Below are positions 7,740-43,810 of a stretch of 64,000 nucleotides of DNA, one piece after another (within the stretch, counting starts at the first letter, position 1; each line of letters opens with the position of its first letter). The notes below the pieces were generated by a model. It did no database searches. It saw only the letters and a list, made by a program, of their open reading frames with translations, and was not told the DNA's origin. A program made the position numbers and the translations under genes. Source of the DNA: Basidiobolus meristosporus CBS 931.73 (lineage: Eukaryota; Fungi; Basidiobolomycota); assembly GCA_002104905.1 (NCBI GenBank), contig MCFE01000392.1, forward strand, positions 18,747 to 82,746, given 5' to 3'.

Positions 7740-10700
7740 AGAGAGCCTGAGGAGTCTGCATTATTACCTTCAATGGGCACACTGTCCACAGGGCCTTTTT
7801 TGGATGAAGCCCTGCTTTTTGTACTGAATGTCAAAGCAGACTATTGTCCAACTGTACTTCTGTTGCCATCAGCAGTGGGGTTTGGTTGAGGTCTAGACAA
7901 CTTTGCTTTATTTTTTAGTGGCACATATATGGAAGTGAATCAAATCAAAGGGGAAATAGCGTTACATATATGTGTGTATGTGGTGCCACAACTTTATTTG
8001 TAATGCTTACTATGGTAGGTCATCATTGAATCTTACAATCATGTAGGTTCAATGTCTCAAATTCAAGACTGTCTTTAATCCATATGAGTATTGACCAAGA
8101 GGTGATATGATAGCGTTACATTGTTGAAGGTCAAACTGTTTGCCCCATGGACAAGACTACTTTGACTCAGCGTTGTAAGAGAAGAGAAAAAAGACTATGT
8201 GGCTATTGTGGCAAACTTCTCAGCCATGAAGCACACAAACAGCATGGGAAGTATTACAAGGATCACAGCCAGTGTTTTGCCACCCAAGTCATGTTTGACC
8301 ATTAATTGAACACTACTGTACCAACATTATCTTGCCAGCCAGTTGATATATTTGTATTGGCACCTGACTGTATTTGTCACCTTGCGCAAACTGAGTCAGG
8401 TGAGTTTGTGATGCCTTTAGGCTCACCTCAGCCTTCTGGATATGGCACACATAGTGATAGCTCTGATAAAGAAGGTTCACTGATAGCTGTTGAGCCTATC
8501 TCCCCTAACAACAGTACCACATAAGAGCCTGGTCAAGTCCCTATATGCAATGAGACAACACCTGTTGAAACAAATGCCAAGGATACTTTATGGTGCCAAG
8601 TGAGCCCAGTAATCCATCTACTGGTGAATGATGTAATGTTGTGGCTAAAAAAGTGGCATGTCTCCACTAATATTAGTAATGGTGCTTTGAGGATTTATTA
8701 CTACTTGTTGCCATAATCATACTAGCATGCAACTTGCCATGTACATGGTACAAGTGGACAATCATCATGCGGTTGGCAACCTATGATCCCAAGACTGTCC
8801 TGATTCCAGCATGTGTTAACAGTTGAATGGCATTTGCATCCAAAAATGCTACCATTGCAACATGTCCAAATTGTCAGGAATCCACCACAATTGAGGGAAA
8901 ACATTGTTGACACTCCGGATATATTCTGGTCATATCCCATCTGAGGAAGCTGATGCAGTCCAACAAATATTGCAAAGCTATACGGTACCGCACCTAGTAT
9001 CAATCAAGCACAAACATATCCAGTATATTTGATGGCAAACATTACAAACAGCCAAGAAGTAAGGGCTACTATGAAGGTATGTATGACCATGACTTTGCTT
9101 TAGCACTTGATGAATTCTCATTGAACAAGCACTCAACCAGCAAATCTGGTTGGCCACCAATTCTCTTCAATATGAATCTGCCACCCATCTTACAATATCA
9201 GAGCAATAATTTGATGGTAGTCTCACTGGTATCTGGGCCTAAATCACCGTCCAACCTGGATAGCAACCTGAATCCATTGCTGGATAAATTCTGTATGCTT
9301 TCCAGCATGATAATGGTAAATGGCCATCATGTAAAAGCTGATATAATTATCTGCATTGGAGATACCACAGCCATCAGCAAGATAGCAGGTTTTTCTGGGC
9401 ACAATAGATGGTATTGCTTTCATATGTGTGAGATCCAGGGGATTTACTCCATAACTCACACACATTATTAGTACTCAAACACTGGCACTAAGAACATCAT
9501 TTTTCCACAGAGAGAACATACAGAAGTAAGCCTGCAAATGCAGCAAAGTTGGCAAGGTATAAGCCATTAGCTGGAGTATGGAATCAATTGGAGACCAGAG
9601 ATACTTAAGATAGAGGGTATCTGTTGGAGCAAAAGCTTTTCGCTAGGAGCAATGCATTTGCCTTTCAACAATATCCCTATACTGATGACCAAGTTGTGCA
9701 TGAGGCATTTCAAGCTAAATGAGCCCTTCAAGATACCGGAGAAATTTGTAAGAATTGGCAAGATATTACAGAGTATCTATTACCCTAAGTACTTCTCATG
9801 GGCTCCAATTAATATTCATATGCTTAGGTGACAATACAAATGCAAAGACTGGATGAACTGGATATGTATTTATTCAAATGGTGTTCTGAAGTCATTCCTT
9901 CCAAGAGTACATTGGAAGCATTGGGAGTAATATGTGGACATTGTAGGAATATATATCCAGAAGCGGATCACCAATGCCAACTTGACACATCTACAGTTGT
10001 TGTGTGAAGAGTTTGTGACAGGATTTGAGCTGCTATGTTACAAATATAAAGCAGAATGTGTAGATCTCTGCCATTACTGTAACTATTCTCTACTCCATCT
10101 TGCACAATGTGAGGAGTATATTGGGCCTTGCTTCACCTTTTGGGAGTTTCCTATCCAGTGGATGTGTGGGGAGATAGGAAGACAAGTCAAGTTGCAAGTA
10201 CTACCATATCCCAATCTCATCAAGAATATTACCTTCAAGTCTGTCATTGATGTGATGAGTTGGCACATGGTGAACAGCCAGAAAGGGCTCAAAAATACTG
10301 AGGACAAATGTGCACATGGAGACACCCATGCCTATGGCATTAAGAAGCTGAGCAGTCCCAATGTGTGGGTAATCAGTTAAGTAATGCAAAGTTAGGTTGG
10401 GTGCAACAAGCAACTAAATAATATCAGGAAAACTCTACCAAGGTATGCCAGATTTCTCATGGTCACAAGCCAGCTTCTACACCATTCAATACAGAATTCA
10501 CACAAACAAAAGCCAGAATGCACCTACAGGGGGGATTAGAAGCCAGCAGGGAGATAGAATATATTGGCTAAATACCAAGAAGTTCTTTGCTGATATTCAG
10601 GAGGTATTCACGGCAGAGGTGGCAACAACTGAGCATATGTTTACAAGATGTATATGTTACCAGCAGTAAAAGGTATATGGCAACTTTGCAAGTATCACAC

Positions 10701-11290
10701 TCAAAAGCCATAAAGTTGAGGTGATAAAAGTGTGTCAATTGCGGCAGGTGTGTGTGTTTGAAAGGTCAGTAAGCAGGAGGCCATAGTTTTTTTGATTCAA
10801 ACTATGTATGGAATACCCAAGGTAGTAGTGGGTAAGCAAATAAAGAGGGGTGATTCTACAGTGGAATATATGATTGCACAAGGGGAGGTAGAAGAAGGAA
10901 ATACCATTTGGTATGCTGGTATGGTAGCATTATACAGAACCAGCAGTAGGCCATCATACCGCCAATATAATACCATCAGAGTCTTGCTGTAAGGCCTTCA
11001 AAATACCGTCAAGTTTCTTGCCACATAAGGCAGTTGGATGTCCTTGCCAACTGGATCCACATAAAATAGTAATAGAGCGCAGAAAGACCGCAACAATACC
11101 ATGCAAATATTGTCAAGTTTTATCCCTGTATTTGGTTGTAAAGTTAGTGAAACACTATTATGATCCCATCATAAGATTGTTAAGAGGGTCACTAATTCCA
11201 TGCTGCTGTAATTATGATGGTCTCTAAACAGGAATTCAATGGCTGATACAGATTGCATTTACCCACAGGACCAAATTATTTTTCATAGGG
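7740..11290 (+). mobile_element. CMC/EnSpm (CACTA-superfamily) DNA transposon, 5'-truncated copy alpha, right terminus ...TTTTCATAGGG at 11290
   Basis: Transposase remnants (next feature). Homology with the minus-strand copy at 24944-28400 stops exactly at ggaccaaattatttttcataggg in both copies, which defines the terminus. Left boundary approximate. Confidence 0.8.
8150..10730 (+). pseudogene. Transposase_21/TnpD-like transposase pseudogene with DUF4218-like region
   Basis: Motifs: Cys-rich N-terminus, CVNS...C..C, GWPPILFNMNLPP...GPKSPSNLDS.L.PLLD (ORF 9079-9471), LLHLAQC..YIGPCFTFWEFP..WMCG (ORF 9934-10380). These resemble fungal EnSpm transposases. Multiple stops and frameshifts. Limits approximate. 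Confidence 0.75.
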
Positions 11291-23213: not shown

Positions 23214-25066
23214 GATGCAACATTTAATTACTATTAATGACAGTTGTACAAGATACACATGGGTCTACATCATTGAGAGAAAGGATGACGGTCTATCTAG
23301 GCTCAGGGAGCTTATAGCACTGGTGGAGAGAGAAACTGGTAAAAAAATCAAGAAAATACACTCTGACAATGGTAGAGAATATACCTCAAAACTTTTCATC
23401 CACTTCTGCAAAATTCAACAAGCAGAGCAAGAAACAACTGTACCAAACTCCCCACAGCCAAATGAAGTAGCAGAATGTGCAAATAGATCAATAATTGATA
23501 TGGCAAGATCCATGATCCATTATCATAAATCATCCTGTGATTTTTGGGTGGAATTAGTTGCCACAGTTGTATAACTTAAAATTAGGAGCTGTAGCAGAGT
23601 GCTTTGTGATTCTGTTCCACTTGAAGCATGGTATGAATAACGGACAAGTGCCTAGCACCTATGATTATTTAGGTGTACAGCATATGCCACAAAACATCCC
23701 TGGAATCTGTTATAATTTGAGCCAAAAAGTGTAAAATGCATATTTTTAGGCTACTGCAATGATATTAGAGCATACAGACTCTACAATGCCAAAACTAAGA
23801 AGCTGATCAAGTCCAGGGATGTGTTATTTGATGAATATTCAAAATGCTCATAAAAAATGAAATCAGATGTTGACAAAAATTTCATCTCAAGTCAACTATT
23901 TGTCAGGATTGAATCACAGCAAATCAATGCAAGCTTTTTCACTCTAATGGTCTCTACAACCATGGTGCAGCCTGAATTAGCACCCAGGAATATCCCAGAA
24001 GTGATCATCCAATATCAAATGACAGGAGATCTAACCAGACAAACATAACCCAAATTACTATATCAATGAGGGTACATACTTAGCCCATGCCTATTTGGTA
24101 TATGGTGATGAGCCCCAGACTGTAAAAGAGGTCCCAAATTGCCCTCAGACAAAACTTGGAGATCTGCATTGACTGAAGAATATCAGGCCCTGATGGAAAC
24201 TCAAACTTAGCACTTGGTCAAATTACCAATCAACCAAAAATTGATTGGATGCAGATGGGTCTTTAAGACAAAGTACAAGGCTAATGGTCCAGCTGAAAGA
24301 CACAAAGCAAGACTTATGATCAAAGGATACTCTCAAACAATAGGATTTGACCTCACTGAGACCTTTGCACCAGTAGTCAGTTTAATTCCATCAGATTAAC
24401 ATTGGCTATTGCAGCCAAATACAAGTTTTTGATAAATCAAATGGATGCAAAACTGTATATTTGATTGGAGAACTTGAAGAGGATGTGTATATGGATCAGC
24501 CTGATGGGGTTGCTGACCAAGATAACCTGCATTTGGTCTTCAAGCTTAAAAAAACTTTATATGGACTCAAACAATCACCAAAAGCCTGGAACTGCAAAAT
24601 GAATATTATTTGGCATCTTTGAGTTTCATAAGGAGTAATGCTAATTATAGTATGTGCCATAACCCATATAGAGCAAATCCAGTTCTATTAGCTCTATATA
24701 CAGATGATCTTATTATAGCCACAAATAACCTAGAAACTTTGGAAGAGACTAATTCCAGCCTATCTAAAGAGTTTAAGATGTCCAATCCAGGAGAACACAA
24801 TTACTACTTAGGGATAGGGTTCTCCATGGATAGGAGTACCCAGACTATTACTCTAAGCATTTCTGGTTATATTCAAGATATACTAAAGAAATACTAAATG
24901 GAAGATTGTAAACTGGCAGCTACCCCAATGGAGACAAACCTTACCCTATGAAAAATAATTTGGTCCCACTAGTGAATTCAATCTAGATCAGCTGTCAAGA
25001 TCCCATAATGAGACTGTCATAACACCAACAGCTTGGAATAAATGACCATCTACACAATCTTATGAC

Positions 25067-25415
25067 TGTTGTAGAAATTTGTATTTCCACCTAAATATTC
25101 ACCTAACTTCAACACTTAGATCATCACCTTCAAATCCTAGAGAATACTGACCAAAATTCCTTGTTGGGATTTACTTAGAATACTTTCACTAAAATACCAG
25201 GTACCCAGAACATGAAAATTCTCAAAGTTGTCCAAACAGCCCCAAACTTTGCACACATGTTCTTGGGACCTTCCTTAACCTATTCTATGTGTTTGTTATG
25301 CCAAGACCAGGTAAAAGTATAAATACTACTTTACATTCAGTATATCATTAAGTGAAAACCACATAATCTACTTGTTCTCCAAATCACTTCCAATATCTCC
25401 AAGACTCTTACAGCA
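25067..25415 (+). mobile_element. Solo LTR of copia family C (349 bp)
   Basis: Matches LTRs at 56097-56445 and 60430-60778. Perfect 5-bp TSD ATGAC. Confidence 0.93.
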
Positions 25416-26214
25416 ATGACAGTATCACAATAGCATGTGGCTAATTTTACTGCCAAATACAGTTAAAAAACTGAATGGTGTTTAAGCAGTGTTCTACCTA
25501 AGGTAGCATGGCATTGTTGTGGTCTTATTGTGCTCTAGAACTATTTAAGTGAATTTAACTGGCCAGTATATCCAATTGCCTTATGTGGCAAGAACTTGAC
25601 AGTGTTTTGATGGCCTCCTTGCAGCCTCTGATGGCATTATCACAGTGGCATGGTGGCCCACAGCTAGTTCTGTATAATGCTACCATTTCAACTTAACAAA
25701 TGGTGTGCCCTTTTCTATATCCCCTTGCACGATTCATATACTCTGCTATAGAATCACCCTTCTTTTTTTGCTTACACACTTCTACCTTGGGCATTCCACA
25801 TATAGCTCAAATCAAAAAATAATATGGCCTCCTGCTTACTAGCCTCTACAAACAGGCACATCTGCCATAATTGACATACTTGTATCACCTTAACTTTAAG
25901 GCTTTTTAGTTCAGTACTTGCAAAGTTCCCTTATACTATGTATTGCCGGTAACATATACATCTTTCAAACATATCCTTGGTTGCCACCACTTCTGCCATG
26001 AACACCTCCTGAATATCAACAAAGGACTCTTTAGTATATAGTCAATATGTTCCTTCTCCCCAATGAACTCCAGTTCCCCTTATAGATGTGCTCTGGCTCT
26101 TGATTGTGTTAATATTGTATTGAATGATGTAGAAGTTGGCTTATGACCAAGAGATACCTGGCATACCTTGGTAGAGCTTTCCTAATAGAAATTACTTGCA
26201 TGTTGTACCCAACC

Positions 26215-26750
26215 CAGGAATTTGGGATGGAGCTCATCAACAGCAGACTGGGATTTGAGATCCCAGATCTTGATGCAGGATGAGGTGGCAGCACAGAGCC
26301 AGTATCTGTTGAGGCTGAAGACCAAAGCAGTAACTTCATCACTAGCCTCCATGGAGTAAATGTGCTTGCTGTTATTGAGATCCACAACATGACAACACCA
26401 TCCTTACCAGCAGTAATGCAAAGGGAACCATTAGGAGAGATGATAACAGTGTTGATGTAACTGGTCTGGCCAATATGGTTGGTGCTGATCTTGCACTTGC
26501 AGAGATCCCAGACCTCAAGAAGCAAAATGCAAGCAAATGTCACAGGCTAGGAGAGAAGAGGATTGGATGTGGGAAGAAGGGTGGGTAACCAGAATATGGT
26601 GATAGTTTGTTTCATGGCAAGTTGCTCTGAAGTAACAAGTATTTTCATACATTGTGTAACCCCATGCATCTTTGCTCAGTTCTGGAGATATACATACCTT
26701 CACAAGCTTTTCCCAACCACCAGAGACAATGACAGGGTTGGCAGGCACTG
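26215..26750 (-). pseudogene. RACK1: Captured internal fragment of RACK1 (Asc1/Cpc2, WD40 ribosomal scaffold): partial exon, 184-nt intron (26697-26514), partial exon
   Basis: Joined translation PANPVIVSGGWEKLVK|[99 protein letters not shown] matches the RACK1 WD4-WD6 signature (GWDKLVKVW...SPDGSLCASGGKDG...[12 protein letters not shown]...DEL). GTATGT donor. One 1-nt frameshift near 26384. Confidence 0.93.
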
Positions 26751-28369
26751 ATACCTTCAAAGTAGCCCTTAATTCTTTGCTGTTATCAATGTTTGCCATC
26801 AAAAATGTGGGATATATTTGTACTTGATTGATACTGAGTGAAGTACTCAATAGCTTTACAATATCTTCCAACTTCAAGAGCTTCTTGATATGGGATATTA
26901 CTGGAATATATCCAGAGTGTGTACAATGTTTTCCCCCAATGGTGGAGGATTCCTGACAAGTTTGACACCTTGAAATAGTAGAATTTTCTGATGTGAATGC
27001 TATGCAACTGTTAACACATGTTGGTAGCAGGATAGTCTCTGGTTCATATGTTACAAGCTGCATGATGGTTATCCATTTATACCATGTACATGGTCAGTTA
27101 CATCCAGGATGATTTTGACATTAAGTAGTAGTAAATCCTCAAAGCCCCATTACTTATATTAGTGGAAATATGCCACTTCTCTTGCCACAACCTCACATCA
27201 TTCAGCAGTCAATGGATTACTTGGCTTGCTTAGCTCAATAAAGTATCCTGGAATTTGTTTCCTGAGGTGTTGTCTCATGGCATATTGGTATTGTGCTAGT
27301 CTCATGCAGGGTACTGTTGTTTGGGAGGATAGGCTCACACTCCATCAGTACATCTGCTTCTTCAGAGCTATTGCTCTGTATGCCATATTTAGAAGACTAG
27401 GGGGAGCCTAAAGGTATTGCAAACTCACCTGACTAAGTTGGAGCAAGGTGGCAAGTATAGCCAGGTGCCATTACAGAATATCAAGTGGCCAGCAAGATAT
27501 TGTTGGTACAGTAGTGCCTGGTGAAAGGTCATATACAACTTGTGTGGCAAAACACTTGCTGTGATCCTTGTAACACCTCCTATGCTGTCTGTGTACTTCA
27601 TGGCTGAGAGGCTTGCCATAATAGCCACATGGTCTTTTTTCTCTTCTCTTACAGCATTGAATCAAATTAGTCTTGTCTATTGGGCAAACAATTTAACACT
27701 CAACTTCATAATGCTTTTATATCATTTTTTTGTCAAAACTTGTATGAATATGAGACATTGCACCTACATGAATGTATGATTCAATGATGACCTACCATAG
27801 TAAGCATTCTAAACAAAGTTATGGCACCACATACACAAATACATGTAACACAGTTTCCCCATTGGTTTGGCTCACTTCCATATATATGCAACCAAAAAAT
27901 AAAGCAAAGTTGACTGGTTCCCAACCAAACCCCACTGCGGACAGCAGTAGAAGAATGGTTGGACAACAGCTTGCTTTAACATTTAGTGCCATTAGCAGGG
28001 CTACAAACAAAAAAGGCCCTGTGGACAGTGGGTCTACTGAAGGCAATAATGCACACTCCTCAGGCTCTTGGTCAGGTATGGAATTGGGAATCTCTTTGGG
28101 GCTGTAGGCTGACCATAATGCTGAGGCAAATAAGTATGTAGCAAAAGCAGTGCTTTCAGTTAAAGACCAGCAAGTGGCCAACAAAACATTGCCACCACTT
28201 GTATTGGCAAGTATATTGTCCACTAATACACAAGCATTAATGAGGCTATTAGGTGCAGTGGCTGATAGGATAGATGCAATGGCCCAGAGAAACCAGGGAA
28301 TAGTTCAGAAGCTGGATCAGTGGATCATAAGTGTAGCGCAATCAATATCCCAGGTAGAGAAAGAAGTGC

Positions 28370-29570
28370 CTTAGCTGCAAACAAGGAACTCAAGTAGCTC
28401 AATGTCACAACCAAAGCTGAGCAATTTCCCAATGTAACAGCAGAAGAAAACTGCACAGTCCTTGAAGCGCAACAACAGTGCCCAAGGATACAACCCACAG
28501 AAACACCTATCACCACATGAGAGGGAGAAAATGAAGTGTTTATACCCAAGCCCAAAAATCAAAAGACATTATAGATCTGTGAAGTCATTGGGTGCACTGA
28601 TGAAGGGTGAGCCAATGTGTAAGTGGCTATCAGAAGTCCAGCACAGCATCATCTTAAGGCCAGCATATTATGGGACCATCAGAAGCTCAAGGCAAAGCAG
28701 AATGCACTTGACTTGTTCCATGAGCATTATCCTGAGTTCAAGCAGGCAAAAAGATTTTGAGCCAGCATTGGTATGCTAAGAAAGTATCTTAAGAATAGCA
28801 GAAACTATCAAAGGTGGAAGAACAAGGGTGCAATGGCTAAAATCCAGTGGCTTCCTCAAGAGCCCATTACTAGCAGGTCCAAAAGCTCCAAACAAGCATC
28901 AAAGAGACATCAAGTAGCTGGAAGATTACCAATTAGGGGAAAGCAGGTAGACACAGATGTATTGGTACAGTATTTATCAAGGAAAAAGCGTTTTTCTACT
29001 TAAGCAGCACTCAGTGAAATTAGCAGTGAAGGACCTGGCAAATTAAAAACCAGCACCTACCTCAGGAGCCCATTACTGCATGGGCTGTGAGCTCAAACAA
29101 GTGGGAAAAAGTGTTAGGTTGCCTGCAGAGTGCCAGCAAGAGACAAGCAGGCCAAAGCAGATGCATCACAACAGGATTTATCAAGGAAAAAAGGTAGTTC
29201 AATACAAGAAGCACCCAGACAAAGTATCTGTCAAAGACCTGGCAGTAATAAAGGAAAAGGTACAGAGAAAAAAGTCTACCCAAGCCAGAGACAGGGAAGC
29301 ATAAGAAAATAGCTGCAGGTCTTGCTAATTTACACTGTAAGCCCAGAACAGACTTAATTCCATCATAACCAAGGAGAGTCACTGACAAGAAAACAGCTGT
29401 TTGCAGATATGTTGGAAGCACAGACAGATGAGCTACACTCCAGTGAGATAAATGAGTTTGCAGAGAAATGAAATTCACCTACCACAGTGTCCACATCCTC
29501 CAATGTTAACAGGGTGGAAATCCCACTGTCAGACAAAGTAAGTAGGCTCTATGAAAATGATTGTAATGAT
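28370..29570 (+). pseudogene. Divergently oriented accessory ORF of the CMC family (K/Q/S-rich, internal repeat), degraded
   Basis: ORF pieces 28462-28779, 28773-29003 and 29080-29312 are homologous to minus-strand ORFs 38188-38961 and 39868-40802. Opposite strand to the transposase in each copy. Confidence 0.6.
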
Positions 29571-30464
29571 GCATCTCAAATTGAAATTCCCATGACTAAG
29601 AGGTAGTGATCCCATCAGGACACTGTGCAGAGACTGTTGAAAAATAATTGCACTCCAGATTTCCCAAAAAACTTAGCCAAAATTTTTCTTCACTACAATA
29701 GACTTATTTCATTGTACTGTGCCAGGGCATGCAGTGCAATCCACAATCTCTAAGAGCAATTGGGTGCAATATTACAGCTACCAGTAGGCAGGATTGCTCT
29801 TGGACAATTTTGCAACATGTGGGAGAATCATGCACACTATGGTATAATTGGACACAATGAGGTTGGCATGGATGATTGCGCCAATTTGCAATATTTGCAT
29901 CACATGCACAATTGGATACCGCTACTATGGTAGGAAAATCTGGTATTTGAATATGTTTCTTTAATGTAAGTGGAAATATATGTATATCACACTATAAACT
30001 ACACTGTTACTTACCATTTTGGTTACCATCCCTCCAATTGGATGGAATGTCAATGGCTGATTGATTCAAAAGTATTCTGAAGCTGTCAGCCCCCAATGGT
30101 CACCTTGACCAAAACACAAGCTACCTGATTTGCCATCATATATCCCATTTTGCCCGTTGAGCAGGTAAATCCCTGATCCTAGTGGTTGATTAAGGTGTTG
30201 TGCCAAGCACTTGACCAATCAAACAGGTGCAAAACAAATCAAATGGCTGCACTGGTGTAACAGATGATGTATATATATGCAGGGTGTTTATTTATAGGGG
30301 TTCTGTCTCAAATGTGAGACAACCTTGACATTGCTTATATCAAAAATTTAGTGACCGCTGATTTGCAACGGCTTGATTTGGATTGCATAAAAAAATGTAT
30401 TGTTTGGATCATGACAAATAATAGCAATTCAATGCCATCATATCATCTTCTCCTAGGTTTTTTT

Positions 30465-33400
30465 TGTTGCAATTTAAGAAGTGATTTGGATATAAGGAAA
30501 TTACCAAGAAATAGTGATAATAGTTGAACTGTTGTTTATTCATAAAGAAGCTCAGTATTTATACCTTTGTAGAAGTAATACAGCTGCAACACTAAGTAGG
30601 GAGGGTTTCTCAATATTCAGGAGCATTCTGTAACAGTTTCAGGGTTAGTACATAATGTTTGGTAATAGTGCTAATTTGATCCTGACTATAGGGGAATAAT
30701 CATAAGATCATATATCTGGAGAAAGTGGCGAAGTTAAGGCAGTAAATGAGTCCTATAGTGACTAAGACTAGCCTAGAACTGTTAAGTAAATTGTTAGCTG
30801 CTGAATGATACCAAATAGTCCAATATTTCAACACTCCCCCTCAACTAAATAATTTCTTTATCCCAATTTCTCTCTAAGGATCTCAAACTGTGGCCTAGCT
30901 AGTGGTTTTGTCAATATGTCTGCCACCATTTTGTCAGTTGGGCAGTAAACCAGCTCCACTAAGTTATTTTCTACAGCTTCCCTCACAAAGTGATGCTGTA
31001 TATCAATGTGCTTAGTTCTGGCATGATTAGTAGGATTTCTAGCTAATGAAATATAACTTTGATCATTTTTGTAAATACATGTTGGTTCACCTGAATTAAA
31101 ACCTAAGTCTTTGAATAATTTTTGTAGCCATATAGCCTCCTTAGTTGCTTGACATGCAGCCATATATTTGGCTTCAGTTGTAGATAGGGCCACAGTGGGT
31201 TGTTTCTTGCAATTCCAAGTAATAGCTGCACCAGCATAAAGAAATACATAGCCTGTGGTAGAGTGTCTGTCAATCAGATCCCTACCCCAATCTGAATCAC
31301 TATAACCATCAAATTTTTGCCTATTAGCTGCTCCAGAGTATTCCAGTACCATATTTATGGTACCTTGTAGATATCTGAAAATCCGCTTAACTGCTGCAAT
31401 TTGATCTGGTCCATAATTCTGCATGAATTGACTGACTATTCCAACTGCCACTGCAATATCTGGACGTGTAGACACCATCAAGTACATTAGGCTACCAACC
31501 ATTGATTGAAAGGGAAAGTTTTGGTCCATATTTGAGCTGTTTTCATTTATAACTGGCTGAGATTTGCTTAATTTCAGGTTATTGTCCATAGGGGTTGCTG
31601 CAGGTTTGCAATTTTCCATTTTGAAGCGTCTAAGAATGTCCCTGATGTACTTAGACTGATTCAGCACAATTTTCTGGTAGGTATGTCAAATTTGACCTCA
31701 ATTCCAAGAAAACAGCTCAATTTTCCAAGATCTTTCATCTCAAACTTGCTGAAGAGATCTGATTTTGTCTGTTTAAGTGCCTCTTGATCACTTAAAGCTA
31801 TAATTAGGTTGTCCATATAAAGAACTAGGATGATCACACCCTTTTTGAGCTGTTTCACATATATACTGTGATCTGTAGTGCTATGAGAGAACCCAATTTT
31901 CTCTAGATATGTGTCAATCTTGTTATACCATGCTCTGGGTGCCTGCTTAAGCCCATACAACAATTTTCTAAGTTTGCACACCTTATGGGGGCTTTTTGAA
32001 TGGGTAAAACCTTCTGGTTGCTCCATATATATAGTTTCTTGCAAATCCCCATTTGGAAAGGCTGTTTTGACGTCCATTTGGTGTAGATCTAGACTGTGTA
32101 AATCTGCCAGGGCTAGAACTGTCCTAATAGAGTTAAACTGGCAACCGGAGCAAATGTTTCCTTAAAGTCTAGTCCCTGGATCTGGGAATAGCCTTTAGCT
32201 ACCAATCTAGCCTTGTACTTATCAACGGCACCATTTGAGGTTATCTAGATCTTGTAGACCCATCTACATGCAATTGGCTTTCTCCCATTTGGTAAATCTA
32301 CCAGTTCCCACGTTTTACCTTGATCAGTGATTGGTACTCCTCCTGCATGGCTTGTTGCCACTCAGTAGCATCTGGACCTTGCATTGCCAGTTCCAGATTC
32401 TGAGGTTTGGCACATAAGGCAAGATAAGCTTCTTCATGATTGTTGGATGTCTGCCACCAGGATCCAGGGGCATTTCTTATTCTGGTAAATCTCCTAACTG
32501 GGATAATCTGTTCTGATCTGGAACTGGTAGAAGTATCTTCCATCTCTGGCTGGATTTGGTACGTATCTTCTGCATTTGTGTTGATTGCATCATCAGGCAG
32601 CTGGCCAATGATTTCTGTGGCTTTCTGATCTGAATTCTCCTCAAATACAACATCCCTGCTCTTGATCAGCTTCTGAATTTTGCCATCATACACTCTATAC
32701 CCTTTAGTATCTTCACAATACTCAAGAAAGATCCCTTTTCTACTCTTTGGTTCCAACTTTGAGCGTTTTTTGTCAGGGATGTGATAAAAAACATCACTGC
32801 CAAAGATCCTGAGATGCTGGAGATCTGGTTTTTTGCCTGTATATGCTTCAAAGGGTGTAGAATCACGTAGTGCTGTTGTTGGGCATCTGTTCTTGATGTA
32901 TACAGCGGTAGCAACAGATTCAGCTCAAAACTTGTAGTCCATTCCCTTATCATGTAGCATAGATCTTCCCATCTCTACTATTGTTCTATTTGCATGATCT
33001 GCTACTCCATTTTGCTGTGGAGTATGAGGAACTGTGGTCTGTTGAAGTATACCAGTAGACAAGCAGTATTTTGCAAACTCCTTTGAGCAGTATTCTCCTC
33101 CATTGTCACTTTGTAGTACCTTCAATTTACACCCAGTTTGTGTTTCTGCCATGTTCTTGAAGTGCTTAAACGTCTCTAAAGCTTCATCCTTTGTTTTGAG
33201 GAAGTACACCCATGTATATCTTGTCTTGTCATCAATAAACGTCATAAAGTATCTCTTGGCTCCAAAGGACAGTGTTCTCATGGGGCCACATATATCTGAG
33301 TGTACTATAGCCAATATTTTGGTGGTATTGATGTCTTTGGAGCTCTTGAAATGTTGCCTAGCTTGTTTGCCATATGAACATCCCTTACAAACATTCAATT

Positions 33401-35147
33401 TGATCAGAATTGAGTATTTTAGGCCCAAAACAAGCTGATTTTTCACCAATTGGCTCATTTTCTGTTCCCCTATGTGTCCTAGCCTCCTATGCCACGTCTC
33501 CCAGTTGGTTTCATCAGTTTCAGCAATGTTGACATACTCAGGTACAATGATCTTGCATTGTAACTTGTATATAATGTGATCTCTGATTCCCAAAGCTAAT
33601 TTTTGTCCATTTTCACTCAATATTGAGCAGCTCAGCTTAGTAAAAACAAATTTCAGTCCCTGAGTAGTTGCTTTACTGATTGAGAGTAGGTTCTTAGCTA
33701 TTCCAGGTACATAGAGTATGTCAGTCAGTTTTGCTGTTGTTGCCCCTGAGTTATCACTCATATTTAGTTGTATAGACCCACTGGCAGTAGCTTCCAATGC
33801 AGAGTTATCTCCCAGATAAACCTTTCTTACAGGAATAGTCTTTAAGTTGCTGAACCACTCCTTTATACCACAAATATGCTGTGATGCTCCAGAGTCAATA
33901 TACCATTCATTACTCCGGTTACTTGCACTCTCTTGTACAGTGATAAATAACTGTTCATCAGTAGTTATATGGTTTGCCTGCTCTAGTTTCTATTTTTTGT
34001 CTGCTTGTTTCTTCTTGCATTCTCTTGCCCAGTGTCCTGGCTTCTTACAGTAGCTACAGCAGCCAGGTTTTCTTTGGTTTTGTTGCTTTCCCTTCTTTTC
34101 TGTATGTTTTTCTGAACTGAATAAAGCATTATCTTCAATTTTCTCTGCTTGATCATTACGTCTGAGTTCTTCATGGAGAAGTCTTCCTTTGACATAGTCT
34201 AAAGTCAAGTTGTCTTCTCTGCTTTCAAAAGAAAGTATGAGTGGCTCATACTTGTCTGGTAGGCTGCAAAGCAGACAGAGTATCTTTTCTTAATCATCTA
34301 CACCAGCATTAATACTGTAAAGTTCTTCTGCAAGTGTCTCCATTCTGGCAATGAGTTGTAGCATGTCATCATCTGGCTTTTTTCTCATGTTGAAGAACTT
34401 TTGTTTCAAATAAAGCTTGCTTGATACTGACTTTGCTCTAAAGATCATCTCTAAGGATTCCCATGCTGCTTTGGCAGTATTTGAGGCATGATTTTGTCCA
34501 ATGAAGGAGTCTTGCACATTGATGCATCTTGCATGGAAGGCCTTTCTCTCCTTCTCTTGAAACTTCTCCACATCTTCTGCTGTTCCTTTGGGCTCAACTT
34601 CCTTTCCTGTTACTATGTTCCAAAGCTTTCTTTCCTCAAGGTGGATCTGCATCTTGATTCTCCAAAGTCTGTAGTTCTTCCCATCAAACCTCTCCTTTAC
34701 AGGGAAGATGTTGGTATTGCTTTGTTTGCTGGTAGAAGTCATCTTTAGAATAGACTAAGGCAATCGGGGCTCATAACCTGTTGCAATTTAAGAAGTGATT
34801 TGGATATAAGGAAATTACCAAGAAATAGTGATAATAGTTGAACTGTTGTTTATTCATAAAGAAGCTCAGTATTTATACCTTTGTAGAAGTAATACAGCTG
34901 CAACACTAAGTAGGGAGGGTTTCTCAATATTCAGGAGCATTCTGTAACAGTTTCAGGGTTAGTACATAATGTTTGGTAATAGTGCTAATTTGATCCTGAC
35001 TATAGGGGAATAATCATAAGATCATATATCTGGAGAAAGTGGCAAAGTTAAGGCAGTAAATGAGTCCTACAGTGACTAAGACTAGCCTAGAACTGTTAAG
35101 TAAATTTTTAGCTGCTGAATGGTACCAAATAGTCCAATATTTCAACA
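30465..35147 (-). mobile_element. Full-length Ty1/copia family A copy 2
   Basis: 369-bp LTRs (30465-30833, 34779-35147). TSD TTTTT, with the empty site (7 A) at 12234-12240. PBS GGTTATGAGCCC at 34778-34767. PPT 30834-30842. Confidence 0.96.
30858..34742 (-). pseudogene. Copia A2 gag-pol, broken by several stops and frameshifts
   Basis: ORF pieces 34290-34742, 33990-34208, 32925-33797, 32298-32756, 31661-32077 and 30858-31667 are nearly identical to the A1 polyprotein. Confidence 0.93.
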
Positions 35148-35399
35148 TTTTTCTCACAGGGTTTACTACTGAAGCAATTGGTAGTGATTCACTTTGCACA
35201 CCTAAACTACTTTCTTGTTGACTATCCTCTTAGCCATTTGTGTATTTGTAGTCAGTATTTTGCCTCCTAGTTGATGAGTGCAATGCTGCAGCTTGGCCAC
35301 GCTTAAATGCTCCATATGATGCTACCGAGCTGGCCTGCAGTGCTACACACTAACATGCTCTTTTACTTGCCAAAGGCTCTAGTGGTGGAGGCATTTCAT

Positions 35400-36521
35400 G
35401 TGGGTCATCATCAGTCAGTTAACCTGAAGAAACTCACTGATTGTCAGGTGTAATGGCATGTGGTGGCACAATTTGATGTGCTGGCATGGCCCTTAGCTGA
35501 GCTCAATATGATGCTGCTTGTTGATTCAACTTGGCCTGCCCCAATGGACTTGTGTCTAAATGAGCAGTTTGGCAAGTTCTGGTGGTTTTGCTCGGAAGCA
35601 TGCACATTGACCCAACATATAGTGACTCAATGTGTGGCACTCTTGTGAAGGGTGTTGGCATATTTTGGACTGGCATGCACTGGCTTGCAGAAGTTGCAAG
35701 GGATGGTAAGGAATCCAGCAAAGAGTGCTGGTGAAATCAAGTTGCTGTTGCTTGCAATCAGTATTCTTCCTCTTGAAGCCCACCTTCTGGTTCCTCAAAG
35801 TACTCACTTACCCTCTGTCAGTTACTTTGGAACTGTTGCTTAGATGAGTCCTGTGTATAATGCTCTTGGAAGCCACATAACTCTACTAATATATCATGTA
35901 ATACATTAGTCATTTTAGGCAAAAACTCATTCAAATCTCCTTGGTTCCCAAAGTTGAGGCACAAACAGATGTGTCCAATCTGTACTCTGCAAATTGCATG
36001 CAAAATTGTTTCTACATGGCTTCCTCATCAAATCCCCTCACTCTCAGCTCATTCTTGATTTCAATACTTGACTTGTTATGTATCTTGTTACATACATCTG
36101 CTGGCATTTTGATGTAGAACTCATGCCACAGCTTTCTACTCAGGTTCTTCCATCTCTGTCAACTCTCTGAGGTATCTAGTTCTGCTAGGTTAATGAGTAG
36201 TACCAAAATATCTGTATGAAGACTCATCATAGACACTTGGGCCATACTAAAATCATTTAGCAAGAACTCACATGGATTCAACATTGACTTCTCTGGTCTG
36301 GACTGCGCTGTGAGCTGGGGGATACGTTTTGTCTGGGTTGTACTAAAGTTGAGTTGAGACTTGGTATAGGGACTGTAGTGATGGATTTGGGTACTTATAC
36401 AGTAGTGTATTGGCATCAACCTGGTCTTATACAAAATATATATGAAAACTAATGTATTGTTGAGTTTTCTATATATTATGCATGGTGCATCTTGAATTAC
36501 ATTGACACAAATTGGATCCAA
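35400..36521 (-). pseudogene. Putative second gene of the PHIS element, unknown function, degraded
   Basis: Head-to-head with the transposase. Fragments (ORFs 36159-36521, 35818-36003) share protein motifs with the paralog at 11291-11511 (LRVRGF, YRLD, CLN.G.Q, MTNV...ILVEL.GF). Limits approximate. Confidence 0.4.
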
Positions 36522-36968
36522 TTAGTTACAGATTTCCTATTTGATTATAGACTTGTGAGTCAAGCATCAATAAAAATACTAAGTCTTTGTTTGAGTTTGA
36601 TTTTTGCAACATAATCATGGGATACATGGCAATTGATGGAGATTCATTCATAATGCAGGAAAAATCAGATAAATAAAGCTGCTTGTGCCAAATTAAATCA
36701 ATTCACCTCAGCCCAATCACCTACCAATTTTATTATGACTTACTCATCTGAATGATGCTTTTTCATCATTCCCATAATTACCACTGAATTTCCTTTTGAC
36801 ACACTAGAGGAGATCTATATCAAGCACTGTGGACCATCTGCCCTAATCTACTCAAGGAGATCCCTTGTTAAGCTTCTGTGGTACTACAAGAACTATTGCC
36901 CCACAAGGCTTCATTCCACCATCCATTGCAACAAAAGTCCTAGAGGCTTTTACTCCCAGCTGATAGCA

Positions 36969-37622
36969 ATGGAGAACCACCTTGCAGAGGGTATGAATGA
37001 CCTAGAGCAAGCTTGGAATACTAGGTTCAGAAGCTCCAATAGACTTCCATATCCCAGAGTGTTCAGCAGCAGGTTCCATATAAGGAGTATTTTGAATAAC
37101 TTCCCAGTCAGGATTAGCAGACCTTCTAGAGGGCAGAGGCACTTTTATTCTGGCAAGTACAAGGCACCCTGTGTGAAGTTTCAAGCACTGTTGAGCATTG
37201 AGGGTAACATCATCTGGTTTAGTGGGCCTTTTGCTGGAAGTAGGCATGACAAAGCACTCTGGGTAGAGAATCATCCGCAACTCAGTAGAGGGGAGAAATG
37301 TATGGCAGACTTAACTTATATAGGAGAGGATTGCTGGAGATTAGGATGTATTACAGCATATAGGAAGCCAAGGAATGGTGTGCTTAGCAGGAAGCATAAG
37401 CTCTACAATGAGATTTTTAATCATTTCAGAGCAAGGGTAGAGCACACATTTGGATATCTGAAGAGATTCAGCCTATTGGCAGATAAATACAGAGGAAAGT
37501 CATTTATAGGAGAAAAAATCAGAATAGGTAAAATAGTTAAGATACTTATCAATGCACAGTATACTCACACAAGAAGACATGCACTGAGAGAAGTGTGTCT
37601 GGGCATTATGAAGAGTAAATAA
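36969..37622 (+). CDS. DDE_Tnp_4 (PIF/Harbinger/ISL2EU-type) transposase, probably 5'-damaged
   Basis: 217 aa. FYSGKYKAPCVKFQ, GNIIWFSGPFAGSRHD, MADLTYIG, YNEIFNHFRARVEHTFGYLKRF. The expected first catalytic Asp reads N (ILNNFPVRISRP). Confidence 0.85.
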   Translation: MENHLAEGMNDLEQAWNTRFRSSNRLPYPRVFSSRFHIRSILNNFPVRISRPSRGQRHFYSGKYKAPCVKFQALLSIEGNIIWFSGPFAGSRHDKALWVENHPQLSRGEKCMADLTYIGEDCWRLGCITAYRKPRNGVLSRKHKLYNEIFNHFRARVEHTFGYLKRFSLLADKYRGKSFIGEKIRIGKIVKILINAQYTHTRRHALREVCLGIMKSK

Positions 37623-37941
37623 AGCAAGGAAAGCACTATTCCAAGCAACATAAGTAAGATTGAATAAAATTACCAGTAACTATATCCTACCACTGGCATT
37701 ATGGTAGAAATCCAGCACTCTAAACAGGCTGGCACTATGTGGCACTATCCAACATAACAAGTCTAATAAATAAGTGGCTTTTGATTGGTTCCCTGCCAAT
37801 TTGCTCATTTTCTGATGCCAGACACTCTACTACCTCCTATGCTTGTGTGCATTGACTGTCTATTGCATCTTTTTTGCACTCCTTACTTCCTGACTGAACA
37901 ATTTCTCTTACTTTTCATGCATACAAATTGATTTATTTCTG

Positions 37942-39230
37942 TCAAAACTTCAGTTGTACCTCAATTGCCAATTGCATTGACCTACACAAGTCCCTATACC
38001 CTACACTAACATTAAGCCCAATCCCACACTCAACAACTAACTTCATTAAAATCCACCTCTCAATAAGTATTTCTGCTGTAATGTTCTGGTTGCATGACTT
38101 TGGCAGGAACCAAACAGCTTTATGCCACGGCTCATTCACTGGTTCCCACTCATCTTGGTCTTCAGCTGGCACTGCAAGGTCTAGCACCTAATCTGCCAGT
38201 CTTTGCAATAAATCCTTGCAATCTTCAAGTGCATTTTCTTGAGCACGGCTCTTAAAAAAGTGTTGCAACCTCTTGGTGTGCCTATGAATGTTCACAAATT
38301 CCACTGAAGGCATCATGATAGTCTTTTGAGCTCTTGACATTGTAGTCTTTTCTGTCAGTGGGATCTCCATGCTGTCAACAATGGAGGATGTGGAGGCTAT
38401 GGTAGACAAATTTTCTTTTTCTACAAACTCATCCACCTTGCTGGAATGTGGCTTAACTGGTGGTGCTCTCAACTCTTTTGAAAACTGCTGTTTTCTTGTT
38501 GGTAATTCTTCTTGACCATGCTGGGATTTAGTCTGTCCCAGGCTTGCAATGTAAATTTGCAAGAACTGCAGTTTCTTTTGCATGCTTCCCTGTCTCAGGC
38601 ATGGATAGACATCTTTTGCTTTACCTTTTTCTTTATCATAGCCAGGTCTCTCACTTCTACTCTGCTTGAGTGCTTCTTGTAATAAACTACTTTTTCTCCT
38701 TGATAAATTCTGCTCTGAAGCATCTGTTTTGGCCTGCTTGTCCCTTGCTGGCACTCTTCTGGCAACCTGATGTTTCTTTTCTGCTTGTTTTGAGCTCTCA
38801 ACCATAGTTGTGATGGGCTCCTGTAAAAGCCACGGGTTTTTATCACTGCCAGGTCCTTCACTGGTACTTTGACTAGGTGCCTCTTTAATTGTACTACACT
38901 TTTTCCTTGATAAATGTTGTGCTGGCACATTTGTGTCTGCCTGCCTGTCCCTAATTGGCACTTTTCCAGCTACCTGACATCTCTTTGGTGCTTGTCAAGA
39001 GCTTTTGGCCCTGCTTTTAACAGGCTCTTGGGGAAGCTGCTGGTTTTTAGCCATGGCACCCTTGTTCTTCTGCCTTTGATAGTTTTTGCTATTCTTAAGA
39101 TACTTTCTTAGCATACCAATGCTGGCCCAAAATACATTTGCCTGTTTGTATCCAGATAATGCTCATGGAACAAGTCAAGTGCATTCTGCTTGGCCTTGAG
39201 TTCCTGATGGTCCCATAGTATTCCAGCCTT
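37942..39230 (-). pseudogene. CMC accessory ORF (copy delta-prime) with a 207-bp / 69-aa tandem duplication
   Basis: ORF 38188-38961: PIRDRQAD... and PARDKQAK... are 69 aa apart. DNA repeat starts at 38641 and 38848. Confidence 0.65.
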
Positions 39231-39561
39231 ACCCTATGAAAGATTATTGAGATAATCCCATCAAAAGGCTGTCACAAAGTTAAAGTCCTGTGACTAAGAG
39301 GTACTGATCCTGTCAGGACACCATCCAGAGACCGTTGAAAAGTAATTGCACCCCAGATTTCACAAAAAATATAGTCAAAATATTTCATCTCAACAATGTC
39401 TAAGTGGCTTTTGAATGGTTCCCTACCAATTTGCTCACTTTCTGATCCCAGACACTCTATTGCCTCCTACATTTGTGTGAATTGATTGGCTATTGCCTCT
39501 TTTTCACTCTCCTTGCTTCCTGACTCAATTGTTTCTCTTACTTTTCATGCATACAAATTGA

Positions 39562-41100
39562 TTATTTCTGTTGAAGCATCAGTTGAACTTCAATTGCCAA
39601 TTGCATTGACCTATACAAGTCCCTATACCCTACACAAACATTGAGCCCAATCCCACACTCAACAACTAACTCCATTAAAATCCACCTCTCAATAATTATT
39701 TCTGCTGTAATGCTCTGGTTCCACAACTTTGGCAGGAACCCAATGCCTTTGTGCCACGGTTCATTCACTGGTTCCCACATGTCCTGGTCTTCAGCCAGCA
39801 CTGCAAGGTCTAGTACCTCATCTGCCAATCCTTGCACTAAATCCTTGCAATATTCCAGTGCATTTTCTTAAGCACTGCTCTTGAAAAAGTGCTGCAACCT
39901 CTTGGTGTGCCTATTAATGTTCCAAAATTCTACTGAAGACATTGTCATTGTCTTTTGAGCTTTTAACATTGTAGCCTTGTCTGTAAGTGGGATCTCCACT
40001 CTGTCAACAATGGAGGATGTGGAGGCTGTGGTAGACAAATTGCCTTTTTCAGCAAACTCATCTAACTTGTTGGAGTGTGGCTCAACTGGCTGTGCTTCCA
40101 ACTCTTTTGAAAACAGCTGTTTTCTTGTTGGTAATTCTTCCTGGCTATGATGGGATTCAGTCTGTTCTGGGCTTGCGGCATTAATTGGCAAGAACTGCAG
40201 TTTTTTTTGCATGCCTCCCTGTCTCAAGCTTAGGTTGACATTTTTCCCTTCACCTTATCCTTTATCACTGCCAGGTCTTTCACTGCTACTTTGTCTGAGT
40301 GCTTCTTGTAACAAACTACATTTCTCCTTCATATACTCTACTCTGATGCATCTGTTTTTGCCTGCTTGTCCCTTGCTGGCACTCTTCTGGCAACCTGATG
40401 TTTCTTTTCTGCTTGTTTTGAGCTCTCAGCCATAGTTGTGACAGGCTCCTGTAAAAGCAGCTGGTTTTTATCACTGCCAGGTCCTTCACTGCTACTTTGA
40501 CTTAGTGCTTCTTGAGTGGTCCTACGCTTTTTCCTTGATAAATGTTGTGCTGGTGCATCTGTGTCTGCCTGCTTGTCTCTAATTGGCATTTTTCCAGCTA
40601 CTTGATGTCTCTTTGATGCTTGTCTGGAGCTTTCAGCCCTGCTTGTAACAGGCTCTTGATGAAGCCACTTGCTTTTAGCCATGGCACCCTTGTCCTTCTG
40701 CCTATGATAGTTCTTGCTATTCTTAAGATATTTACTTAGCATACCAAGGCTGGCCCAATATCTGATTGCCTGCTTAAATCCAGGATAATGCTCATGGAAC
40801 AAGTCAAGTGCATTCTGCTTGGCCTTGAGTTCCTGATAGTCCCAAGGTATGCCAGCCTTAAGGTGATGGTGTGCTAGACTTCTGATGGCCTATTGTATAT
40901 TAGCCCACTGTTCATTATTGCACTCAACAGCTTCACAGATCTTCAATGACTTTTGATTTTTAGGCTTTGGTATAAACACCTTATTTTTTTCCTACCACAC
41001 TGTGTTAGGTTTTTCTGTGGGCTTTATCTTTGGGCACTGTTGTTGTGCTACAAAGACGGTACAGTGTTCCACTGCTGTTACATCAGGAAATGACTCATTT
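39562..41100 (-). pseudogene. CMC accessory ORF (copy delta), frameshifted
   Basis: ORF pieces 40338-40802, 39868-40227 and 39562-39837. Same 69-aa duplication. Confidence 0.65.
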
Positions 41101-42013
41101 CTTGGCTGTGACATTTAGCTACTGAGTTCCTTCTTTGCAGCAAAGATACTGCTTTCTCTACCTGTGATATTAGTTGCTCTACACATATTATCCACTCATC
41201 CTGATTCTGGACTATCTCCTGATTTCTCTGGGCCATTACATCTATCCAATCAGCCACTGTACCTGATTGCTTCATTAATGCCTTGGTATGAGCTGACTAC
41301 ACACTTGTTAATATGGGTGTGGAGATGTTATCAGGGCCACTTGCTGGTCTTCAACTGAAGGTACTGCGTTTGCTACATTCTCATCTGCCTGAGCATAATG
41401 GTCAGCTTGTGGCTCTGCAGAGGTTCTCAATTGTCCGCATTATTACCTTCAATGGGCATACTGTCCACAGGACCTTTTTTGGATGTAGCCCTGCTTGTTG
41501 CACTGAATGTCAAAGCAAGCTGTTGTTCAACCATTCTTTTGTTGCTACTAGCAGTGGGGTTTGGTTGGGAACCAGAAAAGTTTACTATATTTTGTGGCAG
41601 CATATATATGGAAGTGAGTCAAACCAAAGGGGAAATAGTGTTACATATATGTGTGTATGTAGTGCCACAACTTTGTTTATAATGCTTACTATGGCAGGTC
41701 ATCATTGAATCTTACCTTCATGTAGGTGCAATGTCTCAAATACAGATTGTCTTAAGTTCATATGAGTATTGACCAAAAAGTGATATAAAAGCATTATGTT
41801 GTTGAAGGTCCAACTGTTTGCCCCATGGATAAGACCACTTTGACTGAACGCCGTAAGAGAAGAGAAAAAAGTCCATGTGGCTATTGTGGCAAGCCTCCCT
41901 GCCATGAAGCATGCAGACAGCATAGGAAGTATTACAAGGATCACAGCCAGTGTTTTGCCACCCAAGTCATATTTGACCATTAATTGATCACTACTGTACC
42001 AACATTATCTTGC

Positions 42014-42304
42014 TGTCATGATCACATGACAACCATGAACACCCATGCCAAGTTTCAGCTTCCTAGCTCAAATTCTAAGAGATTCCCTTGGAACCTTCTA
42101 CCACTTTCCAGAAAGTTCCTGACCATTCCAAACCATTGTTACACAGTGGAACATTCCATGGAAGCTTCCCATTGTCTTTTTCATAATCCAGTACCATATA
42201 TGAAAATACCAGGTCACATGACTTAGTCATATGTTCAGGTGACCCAATCCATTTCCCCATCCTATCTCAGTGCCTTGCCTTCTATATTATTATCCCCAGC
42301 ACCC
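42014..42304 (+). mobile_element. 5' fragment of a G3-like LTR occupying a ~0.9-kb deletion in CMC delta
   Basis: Starts TGTCATGATCACATG like 4134 (TGTCATGATTACATG) and shares the cattc..tggaagcttccc...ccatatat block with 4270-4320. CMC sequence resumes at tgggcctaaatcaccg (alpha 9235). Confidence 0.65.
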
Positions 42305-42590
42305 TGGGCCTAAATCACCGTCAAACTTGGATTGCTACCTGTATCCATTGCTGGATGAATTTTGTGTGCTTTCCAGCAGGATAACAGCTAGTGGCTGTCA
42401 TGTAAAAGTGCATATTTTTTTCTGCATTGGATTTACCGCAGCCATTAGCAAGATAGCAGGTTATTCCAGGCACAATGGATGGTATTGCTGTCAAATGTGT
42501 GAGATCCAGGGGATTTACTCCATAACTCACACACATTATTATTACTCAAACACTGGCACTAAGAACATCATTTTTCCACAGAGAGAACGT

Positions 42591-43670
42591 TGTAGTGGGG
42601 TCACAGTGACACCCACAGGCAGATGTGCTCATTCTTATGCATTCACTTCCCTAAAAAGGATTACCCCGCCTATATTATTATCATCCCAAATTTGCAATAT
42701 TTCCTATTTTTGTCTATGTGATTATTACTATGCAACCTGACAAACTATTTGTCCCTATTAACCCATTGCACAAGCTATTCTTATTCCTTGCCGAGATGCC
42801 AAGATAAGATAGTTACCTTATAAGGCAAGTACCCCAACAGTGCCCATGTCACGTGACCATCTTGGTTTCATAATCCCCCATCTCACTACCATAAGAGGCA
42901 ACCACATGACACAGAGGTTTCATGTTACCACTACCTGATTGGCTAGGTGCTACTATATCTCATGGAACAATCCGCCAAGAATTTGCGCTATTTTTAGTAC
43001 ACAAAGACATGATTGGTTGTCTACTACCTTCTGGAAACTTCCGGAAAGTATTTTCTAGCAAGAAATTGAGCAGCAAAAAAAGTATATAAGGGAGGCTATC
43101 CCTTAAAATAAATCATCCCTCTTCCAATATTCCGACTTATTGATTAGTGAGATCACCGCTACCTATTACCACTATTTTCTGACTCAGACCTGACAACACT
43201 CCCAGGAAACCGCGCTGACAGCCAACTGACCTTGGAGGCACTACTTGTGAGGAATACTCAGAGTAGGTATATTTTATTATATTTGTTTGTTTTCCCAAGT
43301 TTGTTCTTGTACAGGCAAAGATACTTTTCAGTCTTTGTAACTATTGGTCAAAGCTGCATTCTTATCAAGTCCCTGTTGGTGGAGTTTACAGTTGTTTTGA
43401 CTTTGGAAGCTTTAGTACATTGTCATCTCAAAGGACGTCGAAGCCATTATAAACTTTTGTTAAGACGCCAACTAAGTTGGGGATTGTAGTTCAATAGTTT
43501 TCCCTTGACAAGCTTGAGGCTTTATCCCCCATCACATTAGATTAGACAAAAGACCCAGTATTCCTAGCAAGCTTTTGCCAGAGGTTATTGCACCCAGTGA
43601 ACACCCCACACACATTCACACTTGAGAAGTGTTGGCCGTATTTTCCCCTTTGGACTTATACACCACCACA
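42591..43670 (+). repeat. G2 5' LTR
   Basis: TGTAG...CCACA, repeated at 48704-49783. Contains TATATAAG at 43083 (possible TATA box, conserved in the 51245 LTR). Confidence 0.97.
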
Positions 43671-43674
43671 TATT

Positions 43675-43692: not shown

Positions 43693-43810
43693 GTTCATAC
43701 AAGCTCCCTAGGACCCAACAAGATTTACCTGAAGATTTGAGCCGTTACCCATTTATTGAAACAAGACTACCGATATTATCAAGACTAAAACACCAACCTA
43801 CCTACCCAAA

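Follow-up and report, generated by a model that had tools for sequence, protein, structure and literature searches.

An intron-bearing RACK1 fragment in place of the transposase core of a probable CACTA-type transposon in Basidiobolus meristosporus

How does a piece of a host gene, intron included, come to lie between the two arms of a DNA transposon? The question is raised by a transposon copy, here called gamma, in the 64,000-nucleotide stretch of Basidiobolus meristosporus CBS 931.73 DNA that was analysed as a whole (the window; contig MCFE01000392.1, positions 18,747 to 82,746). RACK1, the gene concerned, encodes a ribosome-associated protein and is single-copy in most fungi. The initial annotation of the locus proposed that a CACTA-superfamily element had exchanged its catalytic core for a RACK1 fragment by Pack-type gene capture. 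Work on the capture of gene fragments by elements of the cut-and-paste type (Pack-MULE, Pack-CACTA) has dealt almost exclusively with plants, where Pack-CACTA/Pack-TYPE elements are described from Arabidopsis, rice and maize (Catoni 2019; Gisby & Catoni 2022, as cited in PMC13317346). The published fungal cases are hAT elements and Helitrons.

Copies were mapped on a composite element, R, consisting of the left part of copy beta followed by copy alpha. The parts of gamma, and the two sister copies with which it was compared, are as follows.

24944–29536, minus strand: copy gamma, colinear with sister copies alpha and beta (BLAST).
24944–25063, minus strand: gamma right end, with the terminal inverted repeat CCCTATGAAA at 24944–24953 (plus-strand reading); exact pattern match, and BLAST to composite R 5616–5737.
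25064–25416, strand not applicable: nested 353-bp LTR of a copia-like family in the gamma right arm, outside the capture; 94–95% identity to other window copies.
25506–26214, minus strand: gamma right arm, corresponding to alpha 10395–11104 (junction alignment).
26215–26217, minus strand: right-joint bases CTG (minus strand), matching neither the transposon nor the parental gene.
26218–26513, minus strand: captured RACK1 exon piece (VWDL...HPKF); PDB phmmer E ~1e-18; 29 differences in 296 bp against the parental-type locus L002.
26514–26697, minus strand: captured intron, GTATGT...AG, 184 bp, phase 0, between K and V of KLVK/VW; base-for-base alignment to L002 4703–4886, 28 differences.
26698–26745, minus strand: captured 3′ portion of the upstream RACK1 exon (PANPVIVSGGWEKLVK), 48 bp; 6 differences in 48 bp against L002 4655–4702.
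26746–26750, minus strand: left-joint bases CAGTG (minus strand), matching neither partner.
26751–29536, minus strand: gamma left arm, corresponding to composite positions 746–3527; 79.5% identity over 2810 bp.
7742–11290, plus strand: sister copy alpha, 5′-truncated, retaining 9081–10394 and ending in TTTCATAGGG at 11290 (BLAST, terminus match).
39232–50910, plus strand: sister copy beta, core retained, in the pieces 39232–42013, 42304–42588 and 49783–50910 (composite mapping).

When the window was compared with itself by BLAST, gamma 28068–26751 aligned with alpha 7742–9080 at 79.6% identity, and gamma 26214–25506 with alpha 10395–11104 at 79.0% identity over 713 bp. The 1314 bp between these blocks, alpha 9081–10394, had no counterpart in gamma, which instead contained 536 bp (26215–26750) at that place. 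The breakpoints at alpha 9080 and 10395 and the loss of 1314 bp, as first proposed for this copy, were thereby reproduced to the base. The composite map further indicated that gamma lacks the left 745 bp of the element together with its left terminus, and that another copy, delta, begins at 29547. With these parts missing, gamma is not itself mobilisable as a Pack element. The description of gamma as a Pack-type element holds in that a RACK1 fragment lies between transposon arms while an intact gene of the parental type exists elsewhere; it does not extend to a complete element with two ends.

The identity of the host element was investigated in the sister copies. CACTA/CMC-EnSpm elements are characterized by a tnp2 transposase, CACTA/CACTG termini, a 3-bp target-site duplication and subterminal repeat arrays. 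The Pfam domain Transposase_21 (tnp2, PF02992) was matched by alpha 8998–9468 (E 1.1e-12; score 48 bits, cut-off 28.6) and weakly by beta 42243–42590 (E 6e-4). Beta retains the core in its segments 42304–42588 and 49783–50910, which are 88–89% identical to alpha. The Transposase_21 match starts 17 bp past gamma's left breakpoint, and the entire recognisable transposase domain is missing from gamma. The family unit is about 5.7 kb long and has termini CCCTATGAAA; its terminal inverted repeats comprise 10 perfect base pairs, and in the termini as printed the two ends have the same base at about 14 of 17 positions. These CCCTA... termini are one base away from the canonical CACTA. Both ends are preserved in none of the window's copies; the triplet TTA flanks gamma on the right and beta on the left, and AGG flanks alpha on the right. 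Tandem subterminal units of about 210 bp occupy element positions 1030–1446 in beta, gamma and delta. The tnp2 match and the subterminal arrays support assignment of the host to the CACTA/CMC-EnSpm (tnp2) type, and the original reading of a CACTA-superfamily element whose catalytic core had been swapped out agrees with the presence of Transposase_21 in alpha and the absence of that region from gamma. The family is hugely abundant: contig depth over the gamma arms is 100–2000x that of exact single-copy contigs. A huge expansion of EnSpm elements has been reported in Basidiobolus (PMC5751038), and the present case points to this genus as one in which gene-fragment capture could be studied.

Copy delta (29547–39231) belongs to the same CACTA family, starts with CTCTATGAAA and adjoins the left terminus of beta at 39232; an insert of 8 kb, lying at about 29700–37770, divides it. 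At least four family copies are nested within 45 kb.

The origin of the DNA at the breakpoints was then examined. The exon piece matched residues 176–219 of RACK1 in many solved ribosome structures (PDB phmmer, E ~1e-18), a region that falls in WD-repeat blades 4–6. The in-frame 55-aa piece was used in a homologue search that returned fungal RACK1 fragments, one of which, P0018, then served as query for full-length RACK1; the 269 proteins retrieved were scored against the fragment. Searches with the window ORFs 26109–26543 and 26518–27063, restricted to a protein size range below full-length RACK1 and outside that of the transposon family, gave no homologues. The top 11 of the 269 were all Basidiobolus RACK1 paralogs, six from B. 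meristosporus and five from B. ranarum, and the best was P0180 of B. meristosporus CBS 931.73, with 80% amino-acid identity. Basidiobolus RACK1 paralogs in general (within P0159–P0232) had roughly 74–80% amino-acid identity to the fragment. Their multiplicity, unusual for a ribosome-associated protein, may stem from ancient polyploidy. The parent, described at first as an essential gene, is not a unique one, since Basidiobolus genomes annotate 5–6 RACK1 paralogs, and the related suggestion that the captured piece might give rise to siRNAs against its parent is weakened by the same multiplicity.

The gene for P0180 is locus L002 (MCFE01000287.1). Window positions 26745–26218 aligned with it over 529 bp without interruption, intron included, and with 87.9% identity. 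A match of this length and contiguity to a Basidiobolus RACK1 gene with its intron is no chance resemblance. The RACK1-derived DNA is accordingly 26218–26745, 528 bp, of which 48 bp come from one exon, 184 bp are an intron with GT..AG borders and 296 bp come from the exon after it. The RACK1 replacement described at the outset is thus real, but of its 536 bp only 528 derive from RACK1, the remaining 5 + 3 joint bases matching neither partner. In L002 the intron (4703–4886) is also 184 bp long, has GT..AG borders and lies between K and V of KLVK/VWDL, exactly where the annotated P0180 is spliced. The captured and parental introns are therefore homologous in sequence, length and position. A parental gene with no intron at KLVK/VW had been named beforehand as the finding that would speak against capture; L002 has a 184-bp intron at that point. 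The B. ranarum orthologue, L003, shares the neighbours AMPK-beta and Ysc84 with L002; its identity is 74.5% to the fragment and 79.6% to L002. An intact, syntenic gene of the parental type is present in both species. In several other fungal gene models (P0018, P0023, P0051 and P0053) an intron just ahead of VWEL seems to have been read through.

Processed retrocopies lack introns and carry a poly(A) tail and flanking target duplications. The unbroken alignment to L002 through the homologous 184-bp intron shows that the fragment is not a processed retrocopy, and no poly(A) was found at the captured piece; this origin was therefore ruled out. The retention of the complete intron supports capture at the DNA level or from unspliced RNA, in line with the earlier suggestion of genomic DNA or unspliced pre-mRNA as the source. 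In the second case, unspliced RACK1 pre-mRNA would have been reverse-transcribed and the cDNA ligated into a break in the transposon. Such a route would account for the intron and for a piece lying wholly within the transcribed region, and reverse transcriptases are abundant in the genome. However, both ends of the piece lie in mid-exon with neither poly(A) nor any 3′-end signature, a DNA template explains all of these features more simply, and nothing in the sequence needs an RNA intermediate. We consider RNA-mediated capture highly improbable.

At the left joint, the transposon can be followed as far as 26751 and RACK1 from 26745 on, with CAGTG between them; at the right joint, RACK1 homology ends at 26218 and the transposon resumes at 26214, with CTG between them. 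Comparison of the arm ends with the insert revealed no clean microhomology at either joint. Two short stretches do recur inside the insert: the 9 nt that close the left arm (TGAAGGTAT, 26751–26759) at 26694–26702 (post hoc p 0.007), and the 7 nt that open the right arm (GGTTGGG, 26208–26214) at 26712–26718 (post hoc p 0.05). Both recurrences sit near the exon–intron border of the insert, away from the joints. A one-step, microhomology-primed copy was considered and rejected, as the positions of the 9-nt and 7-nt matches do not fit it.

Internal-deletion derivatives of Ac/Ds, the P element and En/Spm (dSpm) carry filler DNA. Like them, gamma has lost its transposase region between retained arms and has short unmatched bases and ectopic sequence in its place, as interrupted gap repair predicts. 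Unlike theirs, its filler is long (528 bp) and is an identifiable piece of an unlinked host gene. An account along these lines, with later duplication and decay, is in our judgement the probable history of the copy as a whole. A member of the CACTA/CMC-EnSpm family with CCCTATGAAA termini would have suffered an internal break or gap that took out 1.3 kb, including the transposase (tnp2) core. Repair would have copied 528 bp of genomic DNA from one host RACK1 paralog, the orthologue of P0180, running from mid-exon through the complete intron to mid-exon. Synthesis would have switched to the unlinked RACK1 template and back, as in interrupted gap repair after excision, and the few untemplated bases left at each joint would be the trace of these switches. 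The product would have been a non-autonomous, Pack-type chimeric element, duplicated at least once thereafter and then decaying neutrally in CpG-depleted, presumably methylated repeat DNA, and the left end of gamma would have been lost through a later rearrangement. The synthesis-dependent repair with template switching, and mobilisation by transposition, are the steps that we infer. Gap-repair template switching, the mechanism originally favoured for this locus, remains the simplest account, but it is one of three mechanisms that yield the same product.

End-joining capture of a free DNA fragment gives the same product. So does a route proposed for Arabidopsis Pack-CACTA elements, involving tandem insertion and complementary deletion (Catoni et al. 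2019, as summarised in PMC13317346). Applied here, a RACK1 paralog would have received two family members in the same orientation with about 0.5 kb between them. Aberrant excision would then have removed the 3′ portion of one member and the 5′ portion of its partner, and the remaining hybrid would enclose the chromosomal DNA that had separated them. The outcome would likewise be a contiguous, intron-bearing genomic piece between internal transposon positions, and the great abundance of the host family (arm depth as above) and the presence of spare RACK1 paralogs that could be sacrificed are favourable to it. However, it has to invoke two separate insertions and, in addition, large deletions of 2.2 and 4.8 kb, where the gap-repair account needs a single repair event; moreover, both arms are equally diverged from alpha, and the P0180-type gene is intact at L002. 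Tandem insertion therefore appears unlikely here, and we retain gap repair as the preferred explanation.

It might also be supposed that no capture took place, and that a RACK1 pseudogene was independently struck by two truncated transposon fragments or that the structure is an assembly artefact. The region is indeed a dense nest of broken elements. However, the RACK1 piece adjoins internal element positions 3527 and 4842 rather than termini, the two arms are co-oriented, colinear and equally diverged from alpha, and no RACK1 sequence was found outside gamma's two arms. The internal, colinear position of the joints, together with the absence of RACK1 sequence beyond the arms, rules out that insertions simply struck an existing RACK1 gene.

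The joints were checked against short-read contigs. Two DNA contig sets from one sample, X1 and X2, hold 76% of the sampled words of the window, and possibly derive from the same sample as the assembly. Exact contigs covered 26260–26579 and 26559–26925, the latter crossing the left joint (26750/26751) with 192 and 175 bases on either side. Among the contigs listed, none crossed the right joint (26214/26215) exactly. A contig of 771 bp with 88% identity (82 differences, 2 gaps) covered 25999–26693; it takes in 216 bp of right arm, continues across the right joint and through the long exon, and reaches almost to the end of the intron. It diverges from gamma past 26693, so that its view of the second copy stops before the left joint. 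This contig represents a second chimeric copy, 12% diverged from gamma, and at least one further chimeric copy therefore exists. The same right joint in a diverged contig is not expected of a one-off accident or a misjoin. Misassembly, raised at the outset as a way in which the structure could prove spurious, is thus unlikely: the left joint is crossed exactly, the right joint only by the 88%-identical contig. The internal colinear joints and the contigs across them largely refute both the disrupted-pseudogene and the misassembly readings, and we regard the possibility that no capture occurred as very remote.

Depth in the intron bin was about 780, compared with 135–165 for the exact contigs, or about five times single-copy. 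This allows for about five intron-bearing copies, gamma and the parental gene included, and the copy number of the chimera is low. The second chimeric copy could have arisen by segmental or whole-genome duplication rather than by transposition. The parental-type gene was seen in the sample contigs only as exon-matching contigs. Contig set X3, from the same sample, shares none of the window's sampled words and covers just the two exon parts, not the intron; our guess is that it consists of RNA or of paralog-only sequence. X4, from organism B, contains a contig of 16.8 kb that is 88% identical to the long exon, as L002 is.

To what extent the captured piece has decayed was determined by comparison with L002, from which it differs by 63 substitutions and one 1-bp deletion. 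C>T or G>A changes account for 39 of the substitutions, and 26 substitutions fall at parental CpGs; none of the 24 CpGs of the parent survives in the fragment. The ratio of observed to expected CpG is 0.095 in the whole window against 0.84 in the parental gene. TpG and CpA are in excess across the window (1.39 and 1.33), where CpG depletion is extreme in all repeats. The missing base, after 26381, causes a frameshift in the captured exon, and all non-window contigs have an extra C behind 26381 that restores the reading frame. The encoded amino acid is changed in 20 of 114 codons, and a further 14 are changed only synonymously; the long exon differs from L002 by 10% and the intron by 15%. Judged by the frameshift, the 20 changed codons and the loss of all 24 parental CpGs, the captured piece is dead. 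Its decay is neutral and has taken place inside CpG-depleted repeat DNA, which, from the mutation pattern, is presumably methylated and subject to heavy repeat decay driven by CpG methylation. The fragment thus offers a dated example of CpG decay, 24 of 24 CpGs having gone after a gene piece entered repeat DNA. A 182-aa chimeric ORF (26515–27063) runs from the transposon into the RACK1 exon; its frame differs from that of alpha's transposase ORF, and a functional fusion protein was therefore rejected. The ORF is an accident, not a fusion gene.

The initial annotation knew of no well-documented fungal cases of such capture. For fungi at large this does not hold, since transduplication by hAT elements and Helitrons has been published (PMC6710886, PMC4289320, PMC3538342); for CACTA elements, searches of the literature on transposon gene capture turned up no fungal case. 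Gamma resembles the plant Pack-CACTA elements in being non-autonomous, in containing host exon and intron sequence, in existing in more than one copy and in the pseudogenisation of the captured piece. It differs from them in that it resides in a zygomycete fungus, has CCCTA... rather than CACTA... termini, lacks one end and has a very low copy number, its mobilisation being only inferred. The transduplication of histone H3 by a hAT transposon in Pseudocercospora fijiensis and Pyrenophora tritici-repentis (PMC6710886, PMC3538342) likewise placed housekeeping gene sequence in a cut-and-paste transposon, with copies inactivated by genome-defence mutation while the original gene survived; there, however, the copies number tens to hundreds and bear the marks of RIP, in contrast to the few copies and CpG-site loss of the CACTA-type chimera represented by gamma. 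Gene capture by fungal Helitrons, described in Pleurotus and Fusarium (PMC4289320, PMC5148889), also yields a fungal DNA transposon with a host gene fragment, but these are rolling-circle elements that capture by read-through of an end, whereas in gamma an internal segment was replaced.

The capture in gamma is real and well documented, but of an ordinary kind among transposon gene captures. Taken alone, gamma is the dead and truncated remnant of an element present in few copies, and nothing indicates that it has a function. As a clean capture, intron included, by a CACTA-type element of an early-diverging fungus, it shows that the process is not peculiar to plants. A bolder reading, that the CCCTA-ended Basidiobolus CACTA family is a habitual gene-capturer, the first Pack-CACTA system outside plants, and that the RACK1 chimera is one of many mobilised captures, is possible but doubtful. 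If it were true, the mechanisms of capture would be testable in a fungus.

Several other repeats were noted. A young LTR retrotransposon at 42591–49783 splits beta; its 1080-bp LTRs (42591–43670 and 48704–49783) are 99.9% identical and it has intact ORFs of 1357 and 225 aa. It has probably been active recently. Copia-like LTR copies of about 350 bp were present at 25064–25416, 56097–56445, 60427–60779 and 61092–61443, those outside gamma being 94–95% identical to gamma's. This LTR has the highest contig depth of the region (extreme in X1 and X2, summing to >3 million in X1), is the only part well covered in X3, and may be transcribed. In P0001, a database protein of 186 aa, the RACK1 segment found in gamma occurs three times in tandem (GKAWLWDLNEGKHLY...TIKIWD); here a RACK1 exon was amplified in another genome or a metagenome, independently of the capture.
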